Assembly: GCA_024704765.1 (NCBI GenBank)
Contig: JAKMXF010000029.1
Coordinates: forward strand, 1 to 64,000
Reading direction: 5' to 3'
Origin: Oopsacas minuta
Taxonomy: Eukaryota > Animalia > Porifera
Length of the DNA stretch: 64,000 nt
In this document: one piece after another, positions 2,272 through 17,135 of the stretch
Layout of the letters: each line of letters begins with the position of its first letter
Numbering within the stretch: position 1 is the stretch's first letter
Notes under the pieces: model-generated
What the model was told of the DNA's origin: nothing
The model's database searches: none
The model's input: the letters and a program-made list of their open reading frames with translations, nothing else
Program-made: the position numbers and the translations under genes

Positions 2272-5200
2272 CGTAGCAGGCCTGATAAATTTGTTCAAGC
2301 GGTTGATTGGTGATAATATTAATACAATCAGTAGAAGAACTATAAATTCAATATTCAGATGCTAAAGTTCTGATTTATTATAGAATTAACATCTGCGAAA
2401 AGTCTTCCATAAATTAATCCATATACTCATAATCGTCCTCAATACAGTATCTGGTCATTAACAGAGTTTTCTGTGTTTCTCTTATTATATTTTCTAACAC
2501 AACAGTAACAAGTATATAGTAAAGTTGACCTATTAGCAAACTGTTTGCACTTTTGAGTCCATGAAAATGTTACTACAGTAGATAATGGATATAGTGATAA
2601 TGTCGAAGGTACATAATTTACGGCCAAATCATCACTATATCAAATAAAATTGGCCAGGACAAGTACCTAGAGCGATTATAATATCGCTATTTGATATATT
2701 CATCATATACTGAAATTGGGGAAGACTACTGAACAATTCTGTTCCGTTAATGTTCCTAAAATCGAGGGATTGTTTATGTCAGAAATATGAATATGCGAGT
2801 AATAACAGTTGAAGAGGGTCCACTAGTGCAGTGTTGCTAGATGGACGCTAGTTTATTATGCAAATTTAACTAAAAGGTTATACTAGAAGTATGCCCAAAA
2901 ATGGTGCAGACACCAGACAGGTTAGGAAGTGAGTAGCTCCTGCCTCTGGGTTGTGAACTTTGATTCTACCCAATAACAATGATTAGCCATTTGAACGAAT
3001 ATATTGTTGTTATCTGTTCAAATTGCAAATTGCAAAATGGCTCGCTTCTCTCGCATCTTGCCCTCAATTGCAAGTTATCTGACCCAAATATCTGGTATAT
3101 AGCTCAGGAGCGGTTTTTAATAAAGAGGAGGATCAGATTTCCCCAAACTCCCATCCAGAATAACCCCTTGCCTCAGCCCTCAGGCCTGCCTCCCTATTTA
3201 CCTCCCAGGTGAAGAGTCCTGGTGACGTCCCTATGTGTAAACCTTAAAAGAAATATTAGACCGTGGGGGGTAACCCCGTAAAACCGTGTTTAATGATCAT
3301 TTGGTCGATTTGTGCATAACTAGTCTCAGCTCGCCTAGCTGCGTCAAACGAGGGGTAACTTGATGAGGTTAGGATAAATTCTAGAATGGAATTGTCATGT
3401 TGCCATATTACTGACCAGAGTTGGGGGCCGATTACTTGAATTAGGCTCCAGTCTATATGTTCTCATAAGGCCATGAAAATGAATTACTTGGTTCTCTTCT
3501 TTTCATTGGAAACTGGCACCGCGTCTGGTATTTTTTACAATTTTTATAGGCCAGTTAATACGTAAAATATTTTGACACTTCGATTATCTCTCCACTGCAT
3601 ATTACTTTACATGGCCTAAGTTATAAGCATATGAAAGCCGTGCCAGTATCCCATTATGCCATTAACTTGTTCGTGTTGTCTATAAAGTTATTTTAGTAGG
3701 TAGCTCTATTTCTGAATAAATCTAGGAAGAAATCTTCTGAACAATTTTTTCTTGACAGACCCCGATTTTCAGCCTTACTGACTCTTTATCTTTCTATATT
3801 TTCTGAAAGAAGATAAGAAATTTTGGGCCTAGATAGTATTAGCAGGTATCTCTAGCGTAGATATTCCCTACTGGTGTAGTAGCGGTCAATCTTAGGGCTT
3901 GTATTATGGAGCGCCCCATATCCCGGACTTTTCCTTCATATTTTCATGCCCTTAGAGATTTAGCGTTTAGGCCTATGCCCTACTCACCACCCTTAGTTAC
4001 GATCCAGCTCAAACCGTGGAGTTGCTGGGATGCCGAGTGTACCTGATCTCAAAATAGTTACAATGATGTTGTATACTTTTCCAGAGAGATTACAAGTAGG
4101 ATAGTTTAATGATTCCAAATTATTACATTTAGGGTTAAATCCATACTCTAAATCCCTTTTAAGCTAAGAAGGTCAATAGATGAAACAAAGCAGGTTGTTA
4201 CGTAATCATGGTATCATAAGCATTACATCGCTTGATACTAAACTAATATGCTAGCATCCATGTGTCAGTTAGCATCGTATGATTAGTTAATTAAATATAG
4301 ATGCAATCGGGGGTGTTTTGGGAGGAAGGGGTCGGAACGCCGTTCCACTTTAAATTCCAGGGGGAACGAGGGGGAACGCGAAGGCACTTCTTCATGAAAA
4401 TATTTGGATTAATTAACTATATTTTTCAGTTTTGAAATTAGATTTCAAAATTATAGTCAACATAGTATAATCCAACGTTTACATAAGGAGATGCTTATGT
4501 TCTTTCTTCGATTTTCACCTAAAAAGTACTAAATAAGGTAGCATCAACGTTTTTCTTAAATTATCCACATTTAGTGTAAAATCTTCTATGTTAATGTAGA
4601 CAAGTCCGGAATACTAGAACATAAAAGGGAGTTATTAAATCGACTACTCGCATGCGAGAATGAGTTCATTCGCTGGTGATAATGCTTAGATATGTATGCG
4701 AGGAATAAAATTCATCTGTGAATTTGATACCTGAAATCTGATACACACATATACAACAATGAACGTTTGTTCATTAACTAATTCGAGCAAAACGTTTCTC
4801 CAACTGACATTATCGATAAGAAATACACCACCAACAACCACGGAGTGCTCAAGAAGTCCGAACATTAGTCTCGGCCAAGACCGTTACTAATTCGAGGCAA
4901 TTTCTTCTAAACTATCGTAATCGTAAATATAAAAGTACTTAGCAACAGTGAACGCCATTTCATGAACTAATTCGATAAAATCGTTCACCCAATGCGACTA
5001 TTGTGTCGAAAATACACCGGCTTCACATTCTTGTATGCAAATAGTAATCAAGTTTCTCCTATGTAAATTCTTTGTTGTTTTTATGAATATATAGTATACA
5101 AATTGTTGAAATATGAATTTATTAATTAAATTTTGCAAATTACTTTGCTAAATTCGAGGCACGAAGTGCCGAGTCTCATGCGAACACAAATTGATCAACT

Positions 5201-5807
5201 GCTAGTTAGGGATAATCGAGTATATATATTTCAAATTTAATATTTTAAAATCTATATCTACATGATTTAGTATATGATTAATCATATTTTAACAACTTAT
5301 TACACATATCCAAATTGATGCTAGAAATTTCTTTTCAAAAAGTTAGACATGGGGTAATTGCAGGATTATTATTCGAAATCTTAACCATAAAATTTGAGGA
5401 TAAAACATGAAATATATGAAGTAGGGGACTGATAATATTGATACCATGATAGCTAACACAACTTGGTATTGTATTTAATATGAATTATTTCTTTGATCCA
5501 GGCCCCAAATCAATCAGGGGCTGGAGTTTTGAGGTATCTATACGGCGAGTCAGGGCCACTCAGGGGGCTATGTCCTCTCTGCTCTGAAAAGAACACAAAG
5601 AACTAACCTTGAGTGTACTACAAGTTTGTTTGCTGAATATCTTTCCTCTTTCGAAAGGTGTGGAAAATTTTGTACCTTTCCTTTCATAACTTTTTGCTAG
5701 AGGCACTATTATATAACACCTTGGTCATAGCCAGTTTTGGCAGTAGAAGTGACACGGAGAAAAAAATATAAAATATGCAACAATTTCAATACTGGCCCAC
5801 TACAGCA

Positions 5808-6134: not shown

Positions 6135-6974
6135 TCAAGATGTTTTAGCCAAACAATTCCCTGTTAGTTTTGTTTGTATAGGTGCTGGGATACATGTTAT
6201 TGTACTGTTCCAACTGGTACTTCTACAAACAAGACTTCCACTTCTCATTTGAGTTAAGCAGATTATACAAAATATATGGTTACAAAAATCGCATTTTATC
6301 TCATTACACCCGGATTCATGCTCAAGTAAGGAACAACAGTTAGGACAAGCCCTTACTTGAGGAAACCTCACGATATTACCATCTCTGTCTTTGAACTCCT
6401 TCATTGGGGAAGATTTTAGTTGTTTGATCTTCTCTTTACTACAAAACTCGTTACCACAGTTTACTAGGCCATTCCACTCTCCAAGACAATACCAGCAGAA
6501 GCGAAATGGTTTTATCGATGTTTTTGTGCAAACAATACAAGTAACTTGAGGATCATCAGGTTTTATACGTTGAGTGTAACTTTGGCATCTGGGACACTGT
6601 TGTATATCCTGACTTAGACAAGCGTTGACTGAGAGTGCAGTTGTTAGAAATTGCTTTTCTTGCTCATCAGGTAGTCCAAGTATTAATATATCATCAACAT
6701 CGAGTAGAGTTGTGCAGGAAGCACAGCTAATTTTGTGTTTTAGATTGTTTATTTGTTGCCAAGCATGATCAAGTATATCATCTGGACAGATGTAATGTCC
6801 GCATTTCAACCTCAGCCCCCCTTCATCTGAACAGATACAGCACTCTCCATTAGGATGAGGAAATGTTACCGTCCTAGTCTCATCTCTGAGCCCAATGAAG
6901 AAATCACAGCCAACTCTAACATTACACAATGGAACATTCAGAACCTCTAAGGCGCACCTTGTTGCTCCTGACAT
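6135..6974 (-). CDS. RBR (RING1-IBR-RING2) E3 ubiquitin ligase, copy 1; possibly the last exon of a Ubl-RBR gene
   Basis: RING1 CCIC..CGHYICPDD..CASC, IBR CPRC..CIVC..FCWYC..CGNEFC, RING2 CPNC..HESGCNEIKCDFCNHIFCIIC with the catalytic Cys in GCN. AG acceptors lie immediately 5' of the ATG. Confidence 0.92.
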   Translation of the reverse strand: MSGATRCALEVLNVPLCNVRVGCDFFIGLRDETRTVTFPHPNGECCICSDEGGLRLKCGHYICPDDILDHAWQQINNLKHKISCASCTTLLDVDDILILGLPDEQEKQFLTTALSVNACLSQDIQQCPRCQSYTQRIKPDDPQVTCIVCTKTSIKPFRFCWYCLGEWNGLVNCGNEFCSKEKIKQLKSSPMKEFKDRDGNIVRFPQVRACPNCCSLLEHESGCNEIKCDFCNHIFCIICLTQMRSGSLVCRSTSWNSTITCIPAPIQTKLTGNCLAKTS

Positions 6975-7420
6975 GCTAACTTTTAAATATCAAACAATCA
7001 TTATAATTCAATACACCGTGTTTCCCTGAAATAAGCGTCGGGTGTTCTCTTTCAAGAAATACATAAGCGCTGAGGCGCTTATTCAGGAAATACAGAGCAT
7101 ACAGTAAACTTACCTTACTGATGTCATATGTCATAGAAGGTATCATTATAGCAAGGGTCTAATGTTGAAAGCCATATAGGCTGAATCTGTGAGGGAGGGA
7201 GGGGTACAGCCGCAAGAAATACTTTGGGAAACTTGGTCTCGAGAAGCTAATTGCTTCATGCAAATTGGTCACGGGACCAATTATGTAGCAGGAGTACAAT
7301 GGAATGCTTTAGAGTAGTGTGTGAAAATAATATTTTCAATTATTTGAAGAATGGTGGGGATATATGTCTATATTATGTAAACAATAGTATATCACTACCA
7401 TATACTAATTGATAACGTCA

Positions 7421-7612
7421 TCACATACCTCCTGGTAGTCGTATTACCAGCATTATTGTACTATTATTAGTAATCCCATAATCTTGTGCATTCATCACAA
7501 ATCCATTTCTCATTTCTTCAAGCTGTTTACCAGCATACAACAAACGTTGGTGTTCTACTTTAATTCCACACTTAGCAGAAATGTCACTCTTTAGTTTTCC
7601 AATAGTGTAAAC
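7421..7612 (-). CDS. Ubiquitin-like domain exon (Ubl-1) ending in RLPGG-M-stop; N-terminal exon unresolved
   Basis: After acceptor tattttag (phase 0): VYTIGKLKSDISAKCGIKVEHQRLLYAGKQLEEMRNGFVMNAQDYGITNNSTIMLVIRLPGGM*. Aligns to ubiquitin ...[37 protein letters not shown]. 192 nt. Not in the ORF track. Confidence 0.9.
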   Translation of the reverse strand, partial: VYTIGKLKSDISAKCGIKVEHQRLLYAGKQLEEMRNGFVMNAQDYGITNNSTIMLVIRLPGGM

Positions 7613-9129
7613 CTAAAATAGCAAACGCTACATTCATGACAGTATCAGCTCATCCATTATTTTAGACATTAAACAAAAACAAGAATTCGTCTTATGCATG
7701 GATTCATACCAATAAATTCATTGGTCGCACAATTATCTTTGTTTTTCAGAGCGACACTAACATACTTGCCGACTTGAGTGAAGAACAAAAGAGGGACATT
7801 ACGGGATGTTGCATTTTTACAATAGACGGACTACAAAAAAATCGGGATAATTGTGGTTTTTGGCAAGTTTCAACTGGACATTAGCCTCTAAACATGTGGG
7901 AAAAGGCGGGAAAGTCGGCAAGTATGCCATAAAATTATTGTGAAAAAAAACAGAGGACAAAAATAGAGTATTGAAATTGGGTAGGTAATTGGATAAGTTA
8001 TTCTAACTGGTCATATGAGATTGTTAGATTAGTTAGGTTTCTAGTTTCTTACCTTCAATTCTCCCTTTTCGATGTTAATGGTATACACCTTTGTGCTCAG
8101 TCCCAAGATAAATATTGTGTCCATCTCCATCTTTAACTTTATTCAATATTTTAGGTAAATACTCTTGAAAAATCTAAGTAGTAAGTAGTACTCTTAAATC
8201 AGAAGATTAAATTAAGCCAAATGGAGCGTATAATAATTCTTTTTTTGCTCCTCATAAAGTGTGAGTGTTTGTTACGATATATTTCATTAATATTTGTCTG
8301 GTTTACTATTTTATCCGATCAAATGAAATAAATTTGTGTTGTTCAAATTCATAAATAGATGAGAGAGTTCGGAATACATATATATGTCCAAATATTACGA
8401 ATCAGAACTATGAATAAAGGTGTTAACTCCAAAGCTTCAAAGATATTTGCGGATTACATATTTTGTGGTTGACATGATTATCCTCTATATTATTAAACTC
8501 AATTTGTGTGCTTTGTCTTCTTATTATTATAATGATGGGGAAGATGATCTGCGTATAACATAGGGAATAACATACCCTTCTGTTTACGATATAGGAAGAG
8601 TATACAATTACATTGGGGTAATCGAGTATGCTGATTCCGATCTTCACACTTTCGAATTAATCATATGTAAATTTATTTGTTGTTTTTATGAATATTAAGT
8701 AAACAAATTGTTGAAATATTAATTTATTAACCAATTATTTAGTAAATCATCTACTTTGAAGGGGTACTCTGGGCTCGTCAAATTATTGGGGGGCGAAATG
8801 AGACTCTCGCCCTCCTTAGAAAGTATTGGAGAGGCGACCGCCCCCCTTGTCCCTCACTAGCAGTTGAAACCAAAACTCTAGCATCAATTTGAAAAATGCG
8901 AAAAGGTGTGAAATCTTGTAGCTAGAGATTTGAAAATGTTAAATTTGAAATATACATACTCGATTAGCCCTTACTAGCAGTTGAAACGAATCACTAGTAT
9001 TATTTTAGAAATAAGGTGTGAACTCTACGCACCCAATTACTCCTGACAACATGTTGAAACCTCCTAATCTCTATCTTGCTTCTGAATTTACATAGAAAGG
9101 TGTGAAAATATGATTAATCCCAAAAAAGG

Positions 9130-10319: not shown

Positions 10320-13300
10320 GATGTACTAATGGAAAAGCAAGCACTATTGTTAACCCGCCATAAATAGTGCAACTTTTTGTAATTGTTGAATTCACATAGT
10401 AACATGCAACATTATTGCATCGTGGATGATGGTTTGAGAAGTACTGAAGTGTGTAATACAGTCAGTAATACTCAGTGTGTTAAAAATTAAGAAGTCCATT
10501 TCGCGAATAACATAAAACCATAATTATTGGGAAAGATAATTAATATATGCTCTTATAAAAGTAAAATCTCACGCCATTTTAATGAAGAGATGCTAATTCT
10601 TACTCCTTTTTAGGAGAAATCTCACGGCTTGGTCAGACGCCGCACCAGGTTGGCATATGTGATCACCTGATGACCAATTTTTCATCATTCTAATCACGAA
10701 TATTATATGTACTACCAGGGGCGTAACTATGGGAGGTGTCTCCCAATTTTTGAACATGAAACATTCTTACTTATAGGATGTGTTGTGTCAAATATGCATA
10801 GGAATCAACCAACAAGTTTATTATTACGCCACTAATGTTTTGAAATCTCAAGACTCAGTATGCTTGTTTATTAAATTCCCTGCACATTGGATATTTCTCT
10901 GAGCATTTTTAGAGAGATCGAACCTTTTGATTGGCCGATATTTCGCTCGTAATATTAATTTAGAGAGAAATATTTGTGTCCAGTTATACCCTGGAGTAAG
11001 AAATAATACAATTGTTCGTACTTTTCAATTTGATATTCAAAGACCAAAAGGAAGGAAATATCAAAGATTCAATTGGCCCCCTCATTAAGTGATGTGCTAC
11101 TCCAATATTTTCATTTTGTTACGCCTCGTGGACCACCTATCAGCTGGATAACTACCTCCCTCTAGCTAAGAGATCGACAATTAGAGAGGAAAATGTTTCT
11201 AGGCGGAATTACTTGGCCTTTTATCTGGGTGCGCCCAGAGCACCTCCAGAGATGTTGCTCAGAGTGTTACTGCTTGCTCTGGGTGTGATTGCATTTTGAG
11301 AAATAATTTACAGAAATAATTCGAATTTTTAAAATTTCGTAATACAAGCTATCGCTACAAATGTTGATCACTTGGAGTTTATGGATTATACCTTGTATAT
11401 TCTGAACTAGCCCACTTCATATCCAGGGGGTATAATCTGTCCTAGGACACAATAACCTCGGGTATATTCTGGCCTAGCCCAGACTATACCTGGGGTTAAT
11501 TTAGTCTAGCCCAGATTACCTCCATAGGGAGGGGGTGGTTAATCTGGGTGGGGAGGTTAATCTAGGCTGTTACACTGGGAGTGTCACATCCCGGAAATTA
11601 GGCACACTGGTAAATGAGTCAGCAGCAAATATTAAATTTCTTCAGAAAACTCTCCGTTTAGTTACATGGATTAGGGAAGCACAAATTTTATGCATGAAGC
11701 CACAATATTGAATGATTATTCGATCACTATTAGCACTAGCGCATGATACTGCTAATTGGTTTCACACTTCTGCTGTCAAGTGTGTGCCTATATATCAACG
11801 GTGCATACAGCTTACATTGAATTTTCATTTCGCTATATAAAGGTGAAATTCAAACAAATGCTTGACCATCATGATTCAATATTCTGTGATTTACAAAGCC
11901 AAATATGCAACAAACCACTAGTTTGAAAATCTTCAAGAAAATTATTTGTTCCGTTCCTTGAATTATTGACTATAAATAACTGCTAACCTAGTACCTATGA
12001 AGAAATGTATACCTTTGTTCCTCTAATAGAGCTTGAATTATTTGAATAATGGATAACATCTACATTTCTGGAATGGAGGGAAAGTCTAAAGTATTACATA
12101 TTGAAACACAAAAGATTCAGGTACGTGTACGTAATAACTATTCATGTACTTCTAAACTACCTGATCATTCAACTCAGGCTGCCTCTATACCAAGTTAGGC
12201 GAGTGTGGTCAGATTTGTTGTCCTTCCTGGAAAATATCATATGGTTGAACGTGAATTCCAGTTTGGTTAATTGTAGAAACTACTAGAAGGTAACTAATGG
12301 TTGTACTGTTTACTGTGTGAACGGTGTAAACTAACTCGTAGCTCTTTTACATATATTTGTGTCTACATGCATTTCCATCAGACGAACATTACGAACATCG
12401 CATCATTCTTTTGTAAATAAATACTACGTATCCGAATTGGATTCACAGATTATCTCTGTTTTAGGGCTTTTGAAGCGAATTTCATGATGGGTTAAAAAGT
12501 TTTTCGAATTAATTATATTGATTGCTCTAATTTTGCAATTTGGATTTGTTTCATTTTTAGTACAGCTCCTATAGGGAGATGCCCAACGGCATGTAAGAAG
12601 TCCGACATCCATCCACACGGCCATACGAAATCTATCAGTCTGATTCACATGAAAATGTGCACAAACATACATTTAGGTAGGAAATTTGCACCTCGGTTAT
12701 AATTTTTCCTAAAGTAAATATTCACACCTTTTAGTGATTAATCATATTTTCACACATTTCTATATACAATTCAAAAGCATGATAGAGATTAGGTTTCAAC
12801 ATGTTGTCAGGGGTAATTGGGTGCGTAGAGTCTGATTTTGAGATTTCGAGAGTCTGAAAGTTACAAATTCACAGATTTATCATATGAATAATCATATTTT
12901 CACACATTTGCATATTATTCAAAATCATGCTAAATATTTCGCTTTAACTATAAGTAAGGGGTAATCGAGTATGAAGATTCCAATTTTGACATTTTCAAAT
13001 CTATATCTAAATGATTTATCATATGATTAATTATATTTTCACACCTTTTTGCAAATTATTCAAAATCTTTTAACTGCTATTAACCGATTATGGCGCCAAA
13101 GTGTTACGTTCGTGATGAGAAGGAACACTAACATTTTACCACTTCGTTTTAACCAATTCCCGCGCCAAAAACGAGATTTAGTACCTTTTGACGTCATAAA
13201 ATCACTCATTTTCTGGCAGTATTCGGTTAATAGAAATTCAGAGGCGAAATCTCTGCTGTCCAAACAATTTTACAAAACCTACTCCTGTCCGATTCTTACC

Positions 13301-13690
13301 TGAAAACCCGTTAATTGGGACTTTTTCTTAAATTTCCCTAGAAAATTGCCAGAATTTTATATTCATTGTTTTAGAATTTTATTAGAAATATATTATTAAC
13401 TTGCGCGCTTCGCTTGCTAGGTCGCTGCGCGACACCTTAGCGCCTCAGGTTAGGTTAAGAAACAAAAAGGGTGATAATGATGTCATAATTTCGTCATAGG
13501 TGTGAATTTTCGCCCAAGACTCGAACTTGTCCGAGCCAGGCCCAAAATACCCCTGTATGCCAAAAAAGCCTTGAGGGTCTTTCAGTTTCTTCAATCAATT
13601 CAAACATGTATATTTATATACATGGATTAAGCAGTGGCGGACTACCCAATAGGCAAAGTATGGATTGCCTAGGGGCCAAAACCCCTAGTC

Positions 13691-13819
13691 CAGTGGTTTC
13701 CGACCTCATAGTGGTCCAACAGGATCTCAAACCTTGCATTATGGTCAATGGGAGGGGGTCCACAGTACATAGCCAATCTATTATAGGTGGTCCATGACTG
13801 AAAAGGTTGGGAAACACTA
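13691..13819. mobile_element. hAT (Charlie/Buster-type) MITE, 129 bp
   Basis: TIRs CAGTGGTTTCCGACC and GGTTGGGAAACACTA. Perfect 8-bp TSD CCCTAGTC at 13683-13690 and 13820-13827. Confidence 0.88.
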
Positions 13820-14888
13820 CCCTAGTCAATTGAAAACTATTCTTTTCGCTCTCCTCATGACTTACTATATTTACGGCTTGCTAATCAAATAATTACCAAA
13901 ATAATATACAACATTTCAATTTATCTAGTGTAACCAGAGGGTTTGGTCTTAATCCAGCAATAAGCACTTATTACAGTAAAACCTGAATACCTACACAATA
14001 TTCTTCCATGAGTATATGTATAACTCAGTGTTTAGATTATTTATTTAATTTGTCCTCTGCTACTGTTGTATGATAGTGATTTTTTAAAATAATTGAAGAG
14101 TAGTTCCGTGACTTAATAGACAATTCGATTCAGCGTACTTGAGATACGAGATATACCTATACTGGCTGTGTTGCTGTTTAGAGCATATATTTTGAAATTT
14201 GGGTAATTTGTTTTCTTTATTTTCATATAAATTACAATAAATTTACATATGATTAATCCAAAAGTGTGAAAATCGGATTCAGCATGTTCGATATATTTAG
14301 TGAAATTTATTGAATTTTATTTACTTCCTTAATAAATACGATAAATACATAGTTATGCAACAATTTCAAAATTGCATACCGTAAATCCTTTCCTTGACAA
14401 CGGACAAACAAACAGACAAACAAAATTGAGATTTAATAATATATTCCACGGAAAGTTATTACATCCGAATAAACTGTTCGTTATCCACTTGGGAGACGTT
14501 GTTAACCCAAATGACTCTCATTGAGATACAATAGAACTTGGACGCGGACATAGTAAGTTAGCAAACGAAGTACGTCTTATCCGAATATTCTTCCTATAGA
14601 TACGATTAGTACAGTACTGGGATAGAAAATCCGATTTGGAGAAAGGTACGTACTAACCGAATGTACGTCTTAGCTGGTACTTACTAACTGAATTCTACTG
14701 TAGTAATTATATGTCACATCATTGATAACTTATGATGCAGACCTAAACTCCCAAATTTCTCTGATTTTCTGGGAAATTATCAAATGTTTTCATATAAATG
14801 GAACATTTCTATGCAGTGAGAGATCCACCTTTACAATTCAGATTTTTTGAATATCCTTAAATTCATGTGTTTGTTTCCTCTAATCTAG

Positions 14889-15092
14889 ACTTTTAAGATA
14901 AAGGAACTGAAAGTGAAGGTGAAAACAGTTACTGGGATTGATGTAGAGAAACAACGTTTGCTCTACGGCTCCAAAGATCTCGAGGAAAGTCATAATGGGC
15001 AAGTGATGACATTTGAAGACTATGGTATACATGCTGGTGCCAGTATCGTTCTGGTAGTTAGACTACCAGGTGGTAACAGATATTTTCACTAA
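14889..15092 (+). CDS. Ubiquitin-like domain exon (Ubl-2) ending in RLPGG-NRYFH-stop; N-terminal exon unresolved
   Basis: After acceptor ctaatctag (phase 0): TFKIKELKVKVKTVTGIDVEKQRLLYGSKDLEESHNGQVMTFEDYGIHAGASIVLVVRLPGGNRYFH*. Ungapped alignment to Ubl-1 with the same intron position. Not in the ORF track. Confidence 0.9.
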   Translation, partial: TFKIKELKVKVKTVTGIDVEKQRLLYGSKDLEESHNGQVMTFEDYGIHAGASIVLVVRLPGGNRYFH

Positions 15093-16310
15093 CTTAGATT
15101 ACTGACATACTTATAATATCTTCCATTATTAGTATTTTGTTCACATCCTGAAAGTTATTACATATAATTTGATCGGACTGATCAATTAGTAATTAGAGCT
15201 GTTTAATTAAACGCCTTCGCTTGTTTGGTCGCTGCCTGCCAGTTTGTGTCTCAGAATTATTTTAAGTGTGAAGCAGATAAATTTCTTAATGATTTTAGTC
15301 GCTACACGATGGGATATACTCAGTAGTACGTCCTACGTGCCTCGAGTTAAAAATTAGCGGAAATTTTAATTTTATTAACTATGGTCAATCCAATTACATT
15401 TAATAGCCTTCTGCCGTAAGACTGGAGCTGCGTGGCTTTTGGTTAGTAATCTGGGCATTTCGTGCTTCGAGTATTATGAAATTCTATAATCTTGAAATTT
15501 CGGAAAATGTAATTTTCATGGTGGCGTAATAATCCATAATGTCATGGCATTTAGCATATTGATGGTCCTGAGATTTCAAATTTGAAATTCTTATGATGTA
15601 TATTGATGAACAGTGGCTAAGCAGTGGTTAATATGTGATTTTTCGAAATTTTAAAAGATGACAATGACTTCATAACTTTGTCATAGGTGTGAATGTTCTT
15701 CCAAGACTCGAATTTGTCCGAGCCAGCCATAAATACCCCTGTATGCCAAAGATCAGCCCTGGGGCCTTCCAGGTTCTTCAATCAATTCTGGAATTACAAA
15801 TATATACAGTTGGAATAAATGGAGCACTTTTATAAGCGGGGAATTTTGAGTTCACATTCATTCATTTTCATAGAAACGAACCTCTCTAAGCTAGAAGTGG
15901 GGAACAGGGCATACTTTAGAGATAATTATGTCTCATGCCTTTGAAATTTACCTCTATAAAAGGGGAATTCTACGCTACAATTTCTTGAATATTCAATTTT
16001 TGAGCTAGATTTGGAAAAAATTCATGTATTTTAGTATTTTCGCTATGATGAAAACATCGTTGGGTTTCTCAGTAGAAAATTTCTTATAATTTTGGATTTT
16101 CAACGAACTACCTTAGGGCATATTAGAATGCCTAATGTAAGTCGATGAAAATCCAAAACCAGCCCTGGGGTCTTCCAGGTTTTCAATCAATTCCGACATA
16201 CAAAAATACACAGTGCAGCCTCTATAAGGGGCCTCTATAAATGGAGCACTTTTATAAGCGGGGAAATTTTAGTCTACATTCATTCATTTTGTATCTTCTG
16301 ATTACTAGCT

Positions 16311-17135
16311 ATGGCAGATCTTGACCCTTTTGAAAAGAATAAAGTTTCTTTCAGTGAAGCTAGAGGCTGTCAATTGCTATTCGTTAAATTTAGGGACCAA
16401 GAAAGAACTGTATCTTTCTCACATCCTAATGGTAATTGCAATACATGTGGTCATCCTTCTGGTCTTCAAATGAAATGTGGTCATTTGATTTGCCCAGACG
16501 ATATCCTTGATAAGGCCTGGCATGATATCGGAAACATGAAGTTTGAGATTAGTTGCACAGAATGCGAAAACATTATTTTAATGAAGGATATATTCAAATT
16601 TGGATTGCCTACTCTAGAAGAGGAACAATTCCTAACAACTGCAATAACGACAAACTATTATGAAAGTCAGGATATCCAGCAATGTCCTCAATGTAAGACT
16701 CTTTGTCAAAGAGAAAAAAAGGATTCCCCACAAATATTTTGCGTAATTTGTCCTCGAAGAGGAAAAGATTATTATACATTTTGCTGGTATTGCCTGAGGG
16801 ATTGGAAGAATACAGATAGTCATCAAGTCTGTGGAAATGAGAAGTGTTTGAGAGAAAAGACATTAGCTTTGATTAATTCTCCAATGAAGGATTTTAAAGA
16901 TCATAACGGAAAAGTCGTCTCTATTCCAACTAGGAGAGCTTGTCCCAGAAAAGGTTGCCATACTCTCATCGAACACACACAAGCATGCAATACTATGACG
17001 TGTTGTAGTTGTAAGAATGATTTTTGTTTCATATGTCTATCTCAATCAAGTTCTGGGAGTCTAGCTTGCAAAAGTAAAAGTTATAATGCCACTGGAATCC
17101 GCTGCAGCCCAGCTCCCATTCAAACTAAGTTTTGA
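16311..17135 (+). CDS. RBR E3 ubiquitin ligase, copy 2; possibly the last exon of a Ubl-RBR gene
   Basis: RING1 CNTC..CGHLICPDD..CTEC, IBR CPQC..CVIC..FCWYC..CGNEKC, RING2 CPRKGC..HTQACNTMTCCSCKNDFCFIC. Colinear with 6135-6974. Acceptor ttactag ends at 16308. Confidence 0.92.
   Translation: MADLDPFEKNKVSFSEARGCQLLFVKFRDQERTVSFSHPNGNCNTCGHPSGLQMKCGHLICPDDILDKAWHDIGNMKFEISCTECENIILMKDIFKFGLPTLEEEQFLTTAITTNYYESQDIQQCPQCKTLCQREKKDSPQIFCVICPRRGKDYYTFCWYCLRDWKNTDSHQVCGNEKCLREKTLALINSPMKDFKDHNGKVVSIPTRRACPRKGCHTLIEHTQACNTMTCCSCKNDFCFICLSQSSSGSLACKSKSYNATGIRCSPAPIQTKF

Follow-up and report, generated by a model that had tools for sequence, protein, structure and literature searches.

The ubiquitin-like gene Ubl-1 and the RBR gene RBR-1, which adjoin on the minus strand of the stretch of DNA analysed here (the window; 64,000 nucleotides of contig JAKMXF010000029.1 from the glass sponge Oopsacas minuta, assembly GCA_024704765.1), are in all likelihood two separate genes. 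A donor-like site in the last Gly codon of Ubl-1 can be joined in frame to an acceptor just before RBR-1, and a first-pass annotation of this DNA took the arrangement as a possible switch, in which read-through, intron retention or intronic polyadenylation would give a free conjugatable modifier and splicing would give a parkin-like Ubl-RBR fusion. We find the splicing switch unsupported, and the fit between donor and acceptor is most probably a coincidence. The two-gene reading rests on the conservation of the codon in question, on the existing gene models, on the start Met of the RBR and the stops upstream of it, and on the layout of the RNA contigs.

Ubl-1 is a two-exon ubiquitin-like gene. 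Exon 1 (8130–8053, minus strand) begins with the ATG at 8130, holds 26 codons and ends in the donor AAG|GTAAGA. It is followed by intron 1 (8052–7613, minus strand; 440 nt, GT..AG) and by the coding part of exon 2 (7612–7421, minus strand), which ends in RLPGG-M-stop. Pfam model PF00240 matched exon 2 with E = 9.5e-12 and the whole 89-aa protein with E = 8.3e-12, both above the gathering score, and the protein aligned to ubiquitin residues 22–76, placing the ubiquitin beta-grasp domain in Ubl-1. The LVIRLPGG of the sponge protein aligns with LVLRLRGG of ubiquitin, and the equivalents of Arg72 and Lys48 are retained. The sponge protein differs from ubiquitin in being only about 40% identical over the aligned part, in having a five-residue insertion after the Lys48-equivalent region, and in having Pro instead of Arg74. 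GenBank already holds the 89-aa read-through product (ending RLPGGM), as 'Ubiquitin [Oopsacas minuta]'.

The 3′ end of Ubl-1 exon 2 reads ...CGA CTA CCA GGA GGT ATG TGA, with CCA GGA G|GT ATG TGA at 7435–7421 on the minus strand. The last Gly codon occupies 7429–7427, the hexamer GTATGT 7428–7423 and the stop codon 7423–7421. With its flank the donor-like site is GAG|GTATGT, a good donor, and its description in the first-pass annotation as a phase 1 GTATGT donor overlapping the last GGT codon proved accurate (G|GTATGT, 7429–7423, minus strand), as did the prediction that read-through gives RLPGG-M-stop. The acceptor ttaaaag, with an exon from 6979, was also correctly placed in the RBR frame: joining 7429 to 6979 makes Val from G+TT, followed by AGC ATG, so that RLPG-V-S-M runs into the RBR-1 open reading frame. 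A nearer AG at 6977–6976 is out of phase for this join, as had been cautioned. Between the two genes lies a spacer from the Ubl-1 stop to the RBR-1 exon (7420–6980, minus strand; the proposed intron 2, 449 nt when counted from the donor). A codon read through a G|GT site is automatically Gly, so the overlap between donor and Gly codon is in itself unremarkable, and we judge the donor-like site to be incidental.

The window contains a second pair of the same kind, Ubl-2/RBR-2, which is divergently oriented to the first and about 50% identical to it. Ubl-2 exon 2 (14889–15092, plus strand) ends in RLPGG-NRYFH-stop, its last Gly codon being GGT followed by AACA, and GenBank has a 91-aa model over 12049–15092. 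The RBR-2 open reading frame (16311–17135, plus strand) encodes 274 aa. Here too a donor-like site (RLPG G|GTAACA at 15072) can be joined in frame to an acceptor, ttactag|CT ATG, whose AG is at 16307–16308 and whose exon begins at 16309. The Ubl-2/RBR-2 spacer is 1.2 kb long, and within it, at 15700–16260, a repeat unit of about 150–200 nt occurs twice, as does the stretch '...cagccctggggNcttccaggtt...ataagcggggaa...'. This unit is likely to be an inserted repeat and the source of the greater length of the copy 2 spacer relative to that of copy 1.

The Ubl end was compared in 14 paralogues and orthologues, taken from the window and from loci L003, L005, L006, L007, L010, L011 and L012 of glass-sponge assemblies. 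A Ubl-RBR fusion would have its intron begin with the second and third bases of the last Gly codon, which must then be GT. The codon found was GGT in eight copies, GGA in two, GGC in two, GGG in one and GAC in one, and GT was missing at the donor-like site in about 5 of the 14. The protein nevertheless ends in GG in 13 copies and in GD in the other. A third base that is free while Gly is kept indicates that the codon is translated, and that no conserved intron starts there. In addition, every copy has a stop after a tail of one to five codons (mean 2.4). For positions drawn at random from the loci compared, the probability of a stop within five codons was 0.32, corresponding to about 1e-7 over 14 copies and 4e-5 over nine lineages. 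The frequency of early stops is thus far above random and argues that a short tail is selected, as in the precursors of ubiquitin and ubiquitin-like proteins. The polyubiquitin genes UBB, UBC and UBI4 encode one extra C-terminal residue, and the precursors of NEDD8, SUMO and ISG15 are also tailed. The sponge proteins share with these precursors a diGly followed by a tail of one to five residues, and differ from polyubiquitin in that a single Ubl copy is encoded by an open reading frame with one intron, in a glass-sponge family located beside E2 and RBR genes.

Since the diGly and short tail are kept as protein in 13 of the 14 copies, with the Gly codon varying synonymously, and since the 89-aa protein exists as a GenBank model, the data support a free Ubl precursor (GG plus a one-residue tail) as the normal product of the Ubl-1 open reading frame. 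The proposal that intron retention or read-through yields a conjugatable Ubl therefore stands as regards the product, while the special retention isoform falls away.

Real intron 1 donors in the Ubl family are mostly GTAAGA, GTAAGG and GTACGT, with GTTAAT and GTTAGT also found. We considered treating as non-functional those versions of the terminal site that begin GTT (five GGT copies have this T at +3), and dropped this because two real intron 1 donors start with GTTA. The one copy ending in GD is an O. minuta paralogue (L010:16110–16298, JAKMXF010000277.1) that terminates in RLPGD-T-stop, with GAC for the last Gly codon, and is otherwise near-identical to a neighbour ending in RLPGG-T; its ability to be conjugated has probably been lost.

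The reading frame across the spacer gives the same picture as the Gly codon. A stop-free phase 1 join was possible in three of nine adjacent Ubl–RBR pairs (both pairs of the window and one pair of L011), which is the one third expected, so that the arrangement is no more frequent than chance would make it. In L005, the closest relative (RBR 72% identical), none of the candidate acceptors is in phase, and a TAG stands two codons before the ATG. Logan contigs of further relatives (L002, L004 and L008), which carry unspliced upstream sequence and may be of RNA or DNA type, were used for the frame and stop analysis only. With GT absent from several copies and the frame open in a third of the pairs, the donor, acceptor and frame that a splicing switch would use are not conserved.

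RBR-1 is a single-exon open reading frame of 279 aa (6974–6135, minus strand), modelled as a separate gene in GenBank. Its ATG at 6974 begins 446 nt past the Ubl-1 stop, and its own stop is at 6137–6135. The protein matches Pfam IBR models and shows the conserved Cys/His pattern of RING1-IBR-Rcat with a catalytic cysteine. That cysteine lies in a GCN motif and is kept (C223) in at least 90% of the sequences in a 24-protein alignment of the family. One canonical Cys ligand is lacking from the RING1 of RBR-1 (C-P-D-D). The RBR-1 sequence alone had no match in the PDB at E ≤ 0.01, and a family profile was needed; the best matches of this profile were ARIH2, at positions 125–344 across RING1-IBR-Rcat (E = 1.4e-6), and the Rcat of ARIH1 (E = 6e-8). 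The sponge RBR thus resembles the Ariadne proteins ARIH1 and ARIH2, with the GCN..C motif around the catalytic Cys kept, but has neither Ariadne nor UBA-like domains and, at about 275 aa, is far shorter. These features mark RBR-1 as a short and divergent ligase of the RING1-IBR-Rcat type.

The start of the RBR also bears on the proposed fusion. All 24 aligned RBR proteins share the same start position (MSGA.../MA...), and the residues right after the Met vary. An in-frame stop was present 0–30 nt upstream of the ATG at 13 of 14 RBR loci. In L001, an O. minuta paralogue, the 6 kb upstream contain no Ubl, indicating that the RBR functions as a stand-alone gene. None of 32 homologues retrieved with an RBR query (249–302 aa; range searched 153–486 aa) contained a ubiquitin domain. 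A query with the Ubl exon 2 protein matched only the window's own GenBank protein, a result that is uninformative on relatives because the word index was limited. The Ubl of parkin serves as a regulatory domain within the protein and does not end in a free diGly. The sponge genes are like those of parkin and HOIL-1 in that a Ubl and an RBR (RING1-IBR-Rcat) adjoin in the same orientation, but unlike them in being separate open reading frames, each with its own stop and start codons. Taken with the absence of GT from about 5 of 14 copies and the frame fit in only three of nine pairs, the stops before the RBR ATG and the lack of a fused homologue speak against the earlier proposal that splicing yields a parkin-like Ubl-RBR.

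RNA evidence was sought in public sequencing runs. Four runs contain the stretch, all from one sample of one study and available as Logan contigs only. Paired-end RNA-seq was made alongside the DNA libraries of the O. minuta genome project (PMC10280926). Three of the four runs cover the stretch evenly throughout, as DNA would. The fourth, X4, is RNA-like: its depth is zero in intron 1 (bins 7718–8019) and upstream of 8175 (8176–8472), and a joint from 7610 to 8051 takes out precisely the 440 nt of this intron, whose minus-strand borders are GT..AG. Intron 1 is therefore efficiently removed. The spacer, by contrast, is present in the RNA of this run: contig 29 (681 nt) starts with the final 22 nt of exon 1 and continues over exon 2 and all of the 449-nt spacer as far as 6952, passing 7429 with neither break nor branch. 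The junction from 7429 to 6979, whose detection had been suggested as the check for the switch, was not found among the X4 contigs, which come from a single RNA-like run of unrecorded type and drop rare variants. Only the unspliced form was seen in these contigs, with the same reservation as to rare variants.

What joins the RBR-1 exon at its upstream end can be deduced from the other contigs and the depth profile. The acceptor AG at 6981–6980 (minus strand) lies five nucleotides upstream of the ATG, in ttaaaag|TTAGC ATG, and contig 28 (896 nt), which corresponds to the RBR-1 exon (6981–6086), ends exactly at 6981. The 30-nt overlap between contigs 28 and 29, together with the break at 6981, implies that a second path enters at this acceptor. 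When the contributions of these two contigs were subtracted, an excess of 14.1 remained in bin 6812–6962 and of 24.5 in bin 6963–7113. This ratio, 11:19, places one or more extra contigs, with a depth of about 194, exactly on 6952–6981. The bin at 7416–7566, which includes 7429–7458, is accounted for by contig 29 alone (190.4), so the partner joined at the 6981 acceptor is not the end of Ubl-1 exon 2. The acceptor is thus used with a non-local partner. An unspliced spacer, the lack of a junction contig and a non-local piece at the acceptor are each contrary to a choice between free Ubl and fusion.

The non-local piece at RBR-1 is most likely a spliced leader, as judged from the contig break and the depth. 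At Ubl-1 part of such a piece could be read. The match of X4 contig 30 ends at 8175, next to an acceptor AG at 8175–8174 (minus strand), 43 nt before the ATG, and 11 loose letters lie beyond it. The loose letters plus AG had no match in the 64-kb window when up to one mismatch was allowed, and the 12–13-nt 5′ piece from 8175 was also absent from all loci fetched; no SL RNA gene was found in the window or in these loci. The 5′ piece of the Ubl-1 mRNA, which the window does not encode, is a probable spliced leader. A second AG abuts the Ubl-1 ATG directly (ttaaag|ATG, 8132–8131, minus strand), and the two AGs may serve as alternative leader acceptors. Spliced-leader trans-splicing has been reported for hexactinellids (PMC7986045) and for Aphrocallistes vastus (PMC10282587, the text and supplement of which do not give the leader sequence). 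The sponge sites resemble the spliced-leader acceptors of hexactinellids, nematodes and tunicates in having an AG just before the ATG, in the non-local 5′ piece on the Ubl RNA and in the non-local partner at the RBR acceptor; they differ in that the leader at RBR-1 is deduced from contig breaks and depth. The AG precedes the ATG by 2–9 nt in most RBR copies, with five nucleotides in copy 1 and two in copy 2.

How far the two genes share a transcript is less clear cut. The spacer in the RNA is either the 3′ UTR of Ubl-1 or part of a read-through co-transcript, and the continuity of the spacer contig with both genes indicates that Ubl-1 and RBR-1 may be co-transcribed. The X4 contigs carry no transcript ends, and a contig spanning two genes is not proof of one molecule. 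If read-through RNA exists, it contains both the GTATGT donor and the RBR-1 acceptor, and cis-splicing from GAG|GTATGT to this acceptor is mechanistically possible, the donor being similar to real donors of the family (GTATGT, GTAAGA). In nematodes, according to work attributed to Conrad and Blumenthal, an upstream donor reportedly turns a trans-splice acceptor into a cis acceptor. A fusion mRNA could in this way arise as a rare, non-functional by-product, which would be compatible with two separate genes. None was seen in the X4 contigs, though contigs drop rare variants, and we regard such a by-product as possible but unlikely.

A more elaborate arrangement would be an operon-like Ubl–RBR co-transcript that is resolved by spliced-leader trans-splicing, with a minor cis-spliced, parkin-like isoform made beside the free modifier because both copies of the window happen to have a donor in the last Gly codon that is in frame with the leader acceptor. 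If true, this would be a gene fusion observed at a nascent stage and specific to this species. According to PMC7986045, no operons have been reported in glass sponges. We consider this combination doubtful.

The regulated switch fares worse still. On this proposal, read-through or intronic polyadenylation would make the free Ubl, while splicing from 7429 to 6979 would make a functional, parkin-like fusion, which would let the gene alternate between free modifier and auto-regulated ligase. Donor, acceptor and frame are indeed present in both copies of the window, and RNA in X4 spans both genes and the spacer. However, the conservation data above are against it, both in the missing GT and in the chance-level frame fit, as are the in-frame stops that relatives carry ahead of the RBR ATG. 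At 7429 the exon 2 contig also shows no branch, with no junction contig beside it, the RBR query (153–486 aa) found no fused homologue, and GenBank models Ubl-1 and RBR-1 as separate genes. The switch is accordingly very improbable. A constitutive Ubl-RBR fusion gene, wrongly split in GenBank, would account for the in-frame join in both window copies, but can be dismissed, given that the second Gly and the short tails are kept as coding sequence, that the spacer remains in RNA from which intron 1 is removed, that the RBR start Met is conserved with stops upstream, and that the L001 paralogue occurs without any Ubl. Separate gene models, the missing junction contig, a spacer kept in the RNA, frames that are not conserved and the lack of a fused homologue thus agree in not placing Ubl and RBR in one polypeptide.

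In this neighbourhood GenBank has individual models for Ubl-1 (89 aa), RBR-1 (279 aa), an E2 (242 aa), Ubl-2 (91 aa) and RBR-2 (274 aa). The E2 (UQ_con) gene lies upstream of Ubl-1 (10313–9585, minus strand) and matches Pfam PF00179 with E = 3.9e-21. Two more Ubl–RBR–E2 triplets are found on another O. minuta contig (L010), again with the genes modelled apart, and all four O. minuta Ubl–RBR pairs are separate genes in GenBank. The E2–Ubl–RBR neighbourhood recurs in L005, L006, L007 and L010, all of them loci of glass-sponge assemblies. This recurrence suggests that E2, Ubl and RBR work together, and the three may form a lineage-specific conjugation system of glass sponges. The words 'ubiquitin' and 'RBR' do not occur in the main text of the O. 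minuta genome paper (PMC10280926).

Several other features of these regions were observed. Tandem arrays are frequent, with two E2–Ubl–RBR triplets in L010 and at least five RBR open reading frames within 20 kb in L011, and the clusters adjoin genes for TRAF-type zinc-finger, NHL-repeat and caspase (Peptidase_C14) proteins. The Ubl-1/RBR-1 pair lies between copies of a dispersed repeat, at 5065–5330 and 8615–9120 of the window; these copies share a 70-nt direct match with 86% identity and have 74-nt inverted arms with 89% complementarity. Depth in the DNA runs at 8624–8774 was about 400 times the single-copy level, showing that the repeat is very abundant in the genome.

On the reading that Ubl-1 and RBR-1 are separate genes, the following sequence of events is proposed. 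The Ubl-1 open reading frame would be read through the donor-like GGT ATG to the TGA, giving an 89-aa precursor that ends in RLPGG plus Met. By analogy with the precursors of polyubiquitin, NEDD8, SUMO and ISG15, a protease would then trim the Met tail and expose the diGly, and the modifier could be conjugated via the neighbouring E2 and RBR. RBR-1 would be translated from its own ATG at 6974, and the 5′ end of its mRNA would arise at the AG at 6981–6980, most likely by leader addition. Some RNA appears to cross the spacer from Ubl-1 into RBR-1, with no cis-spliced fusion seen in the X4 contigs.

For genomes that use spliced leaders, these results mean that an acceptor right before an ATG is not to be paired with an upstream GT as a way of inferring gene fusions. 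For glass sponges, they describe an expanded and divergent family of ubiquitin-like proteins that conserve the RLPGG end and are encoded beside short RBR ligases and E2 enzymes.
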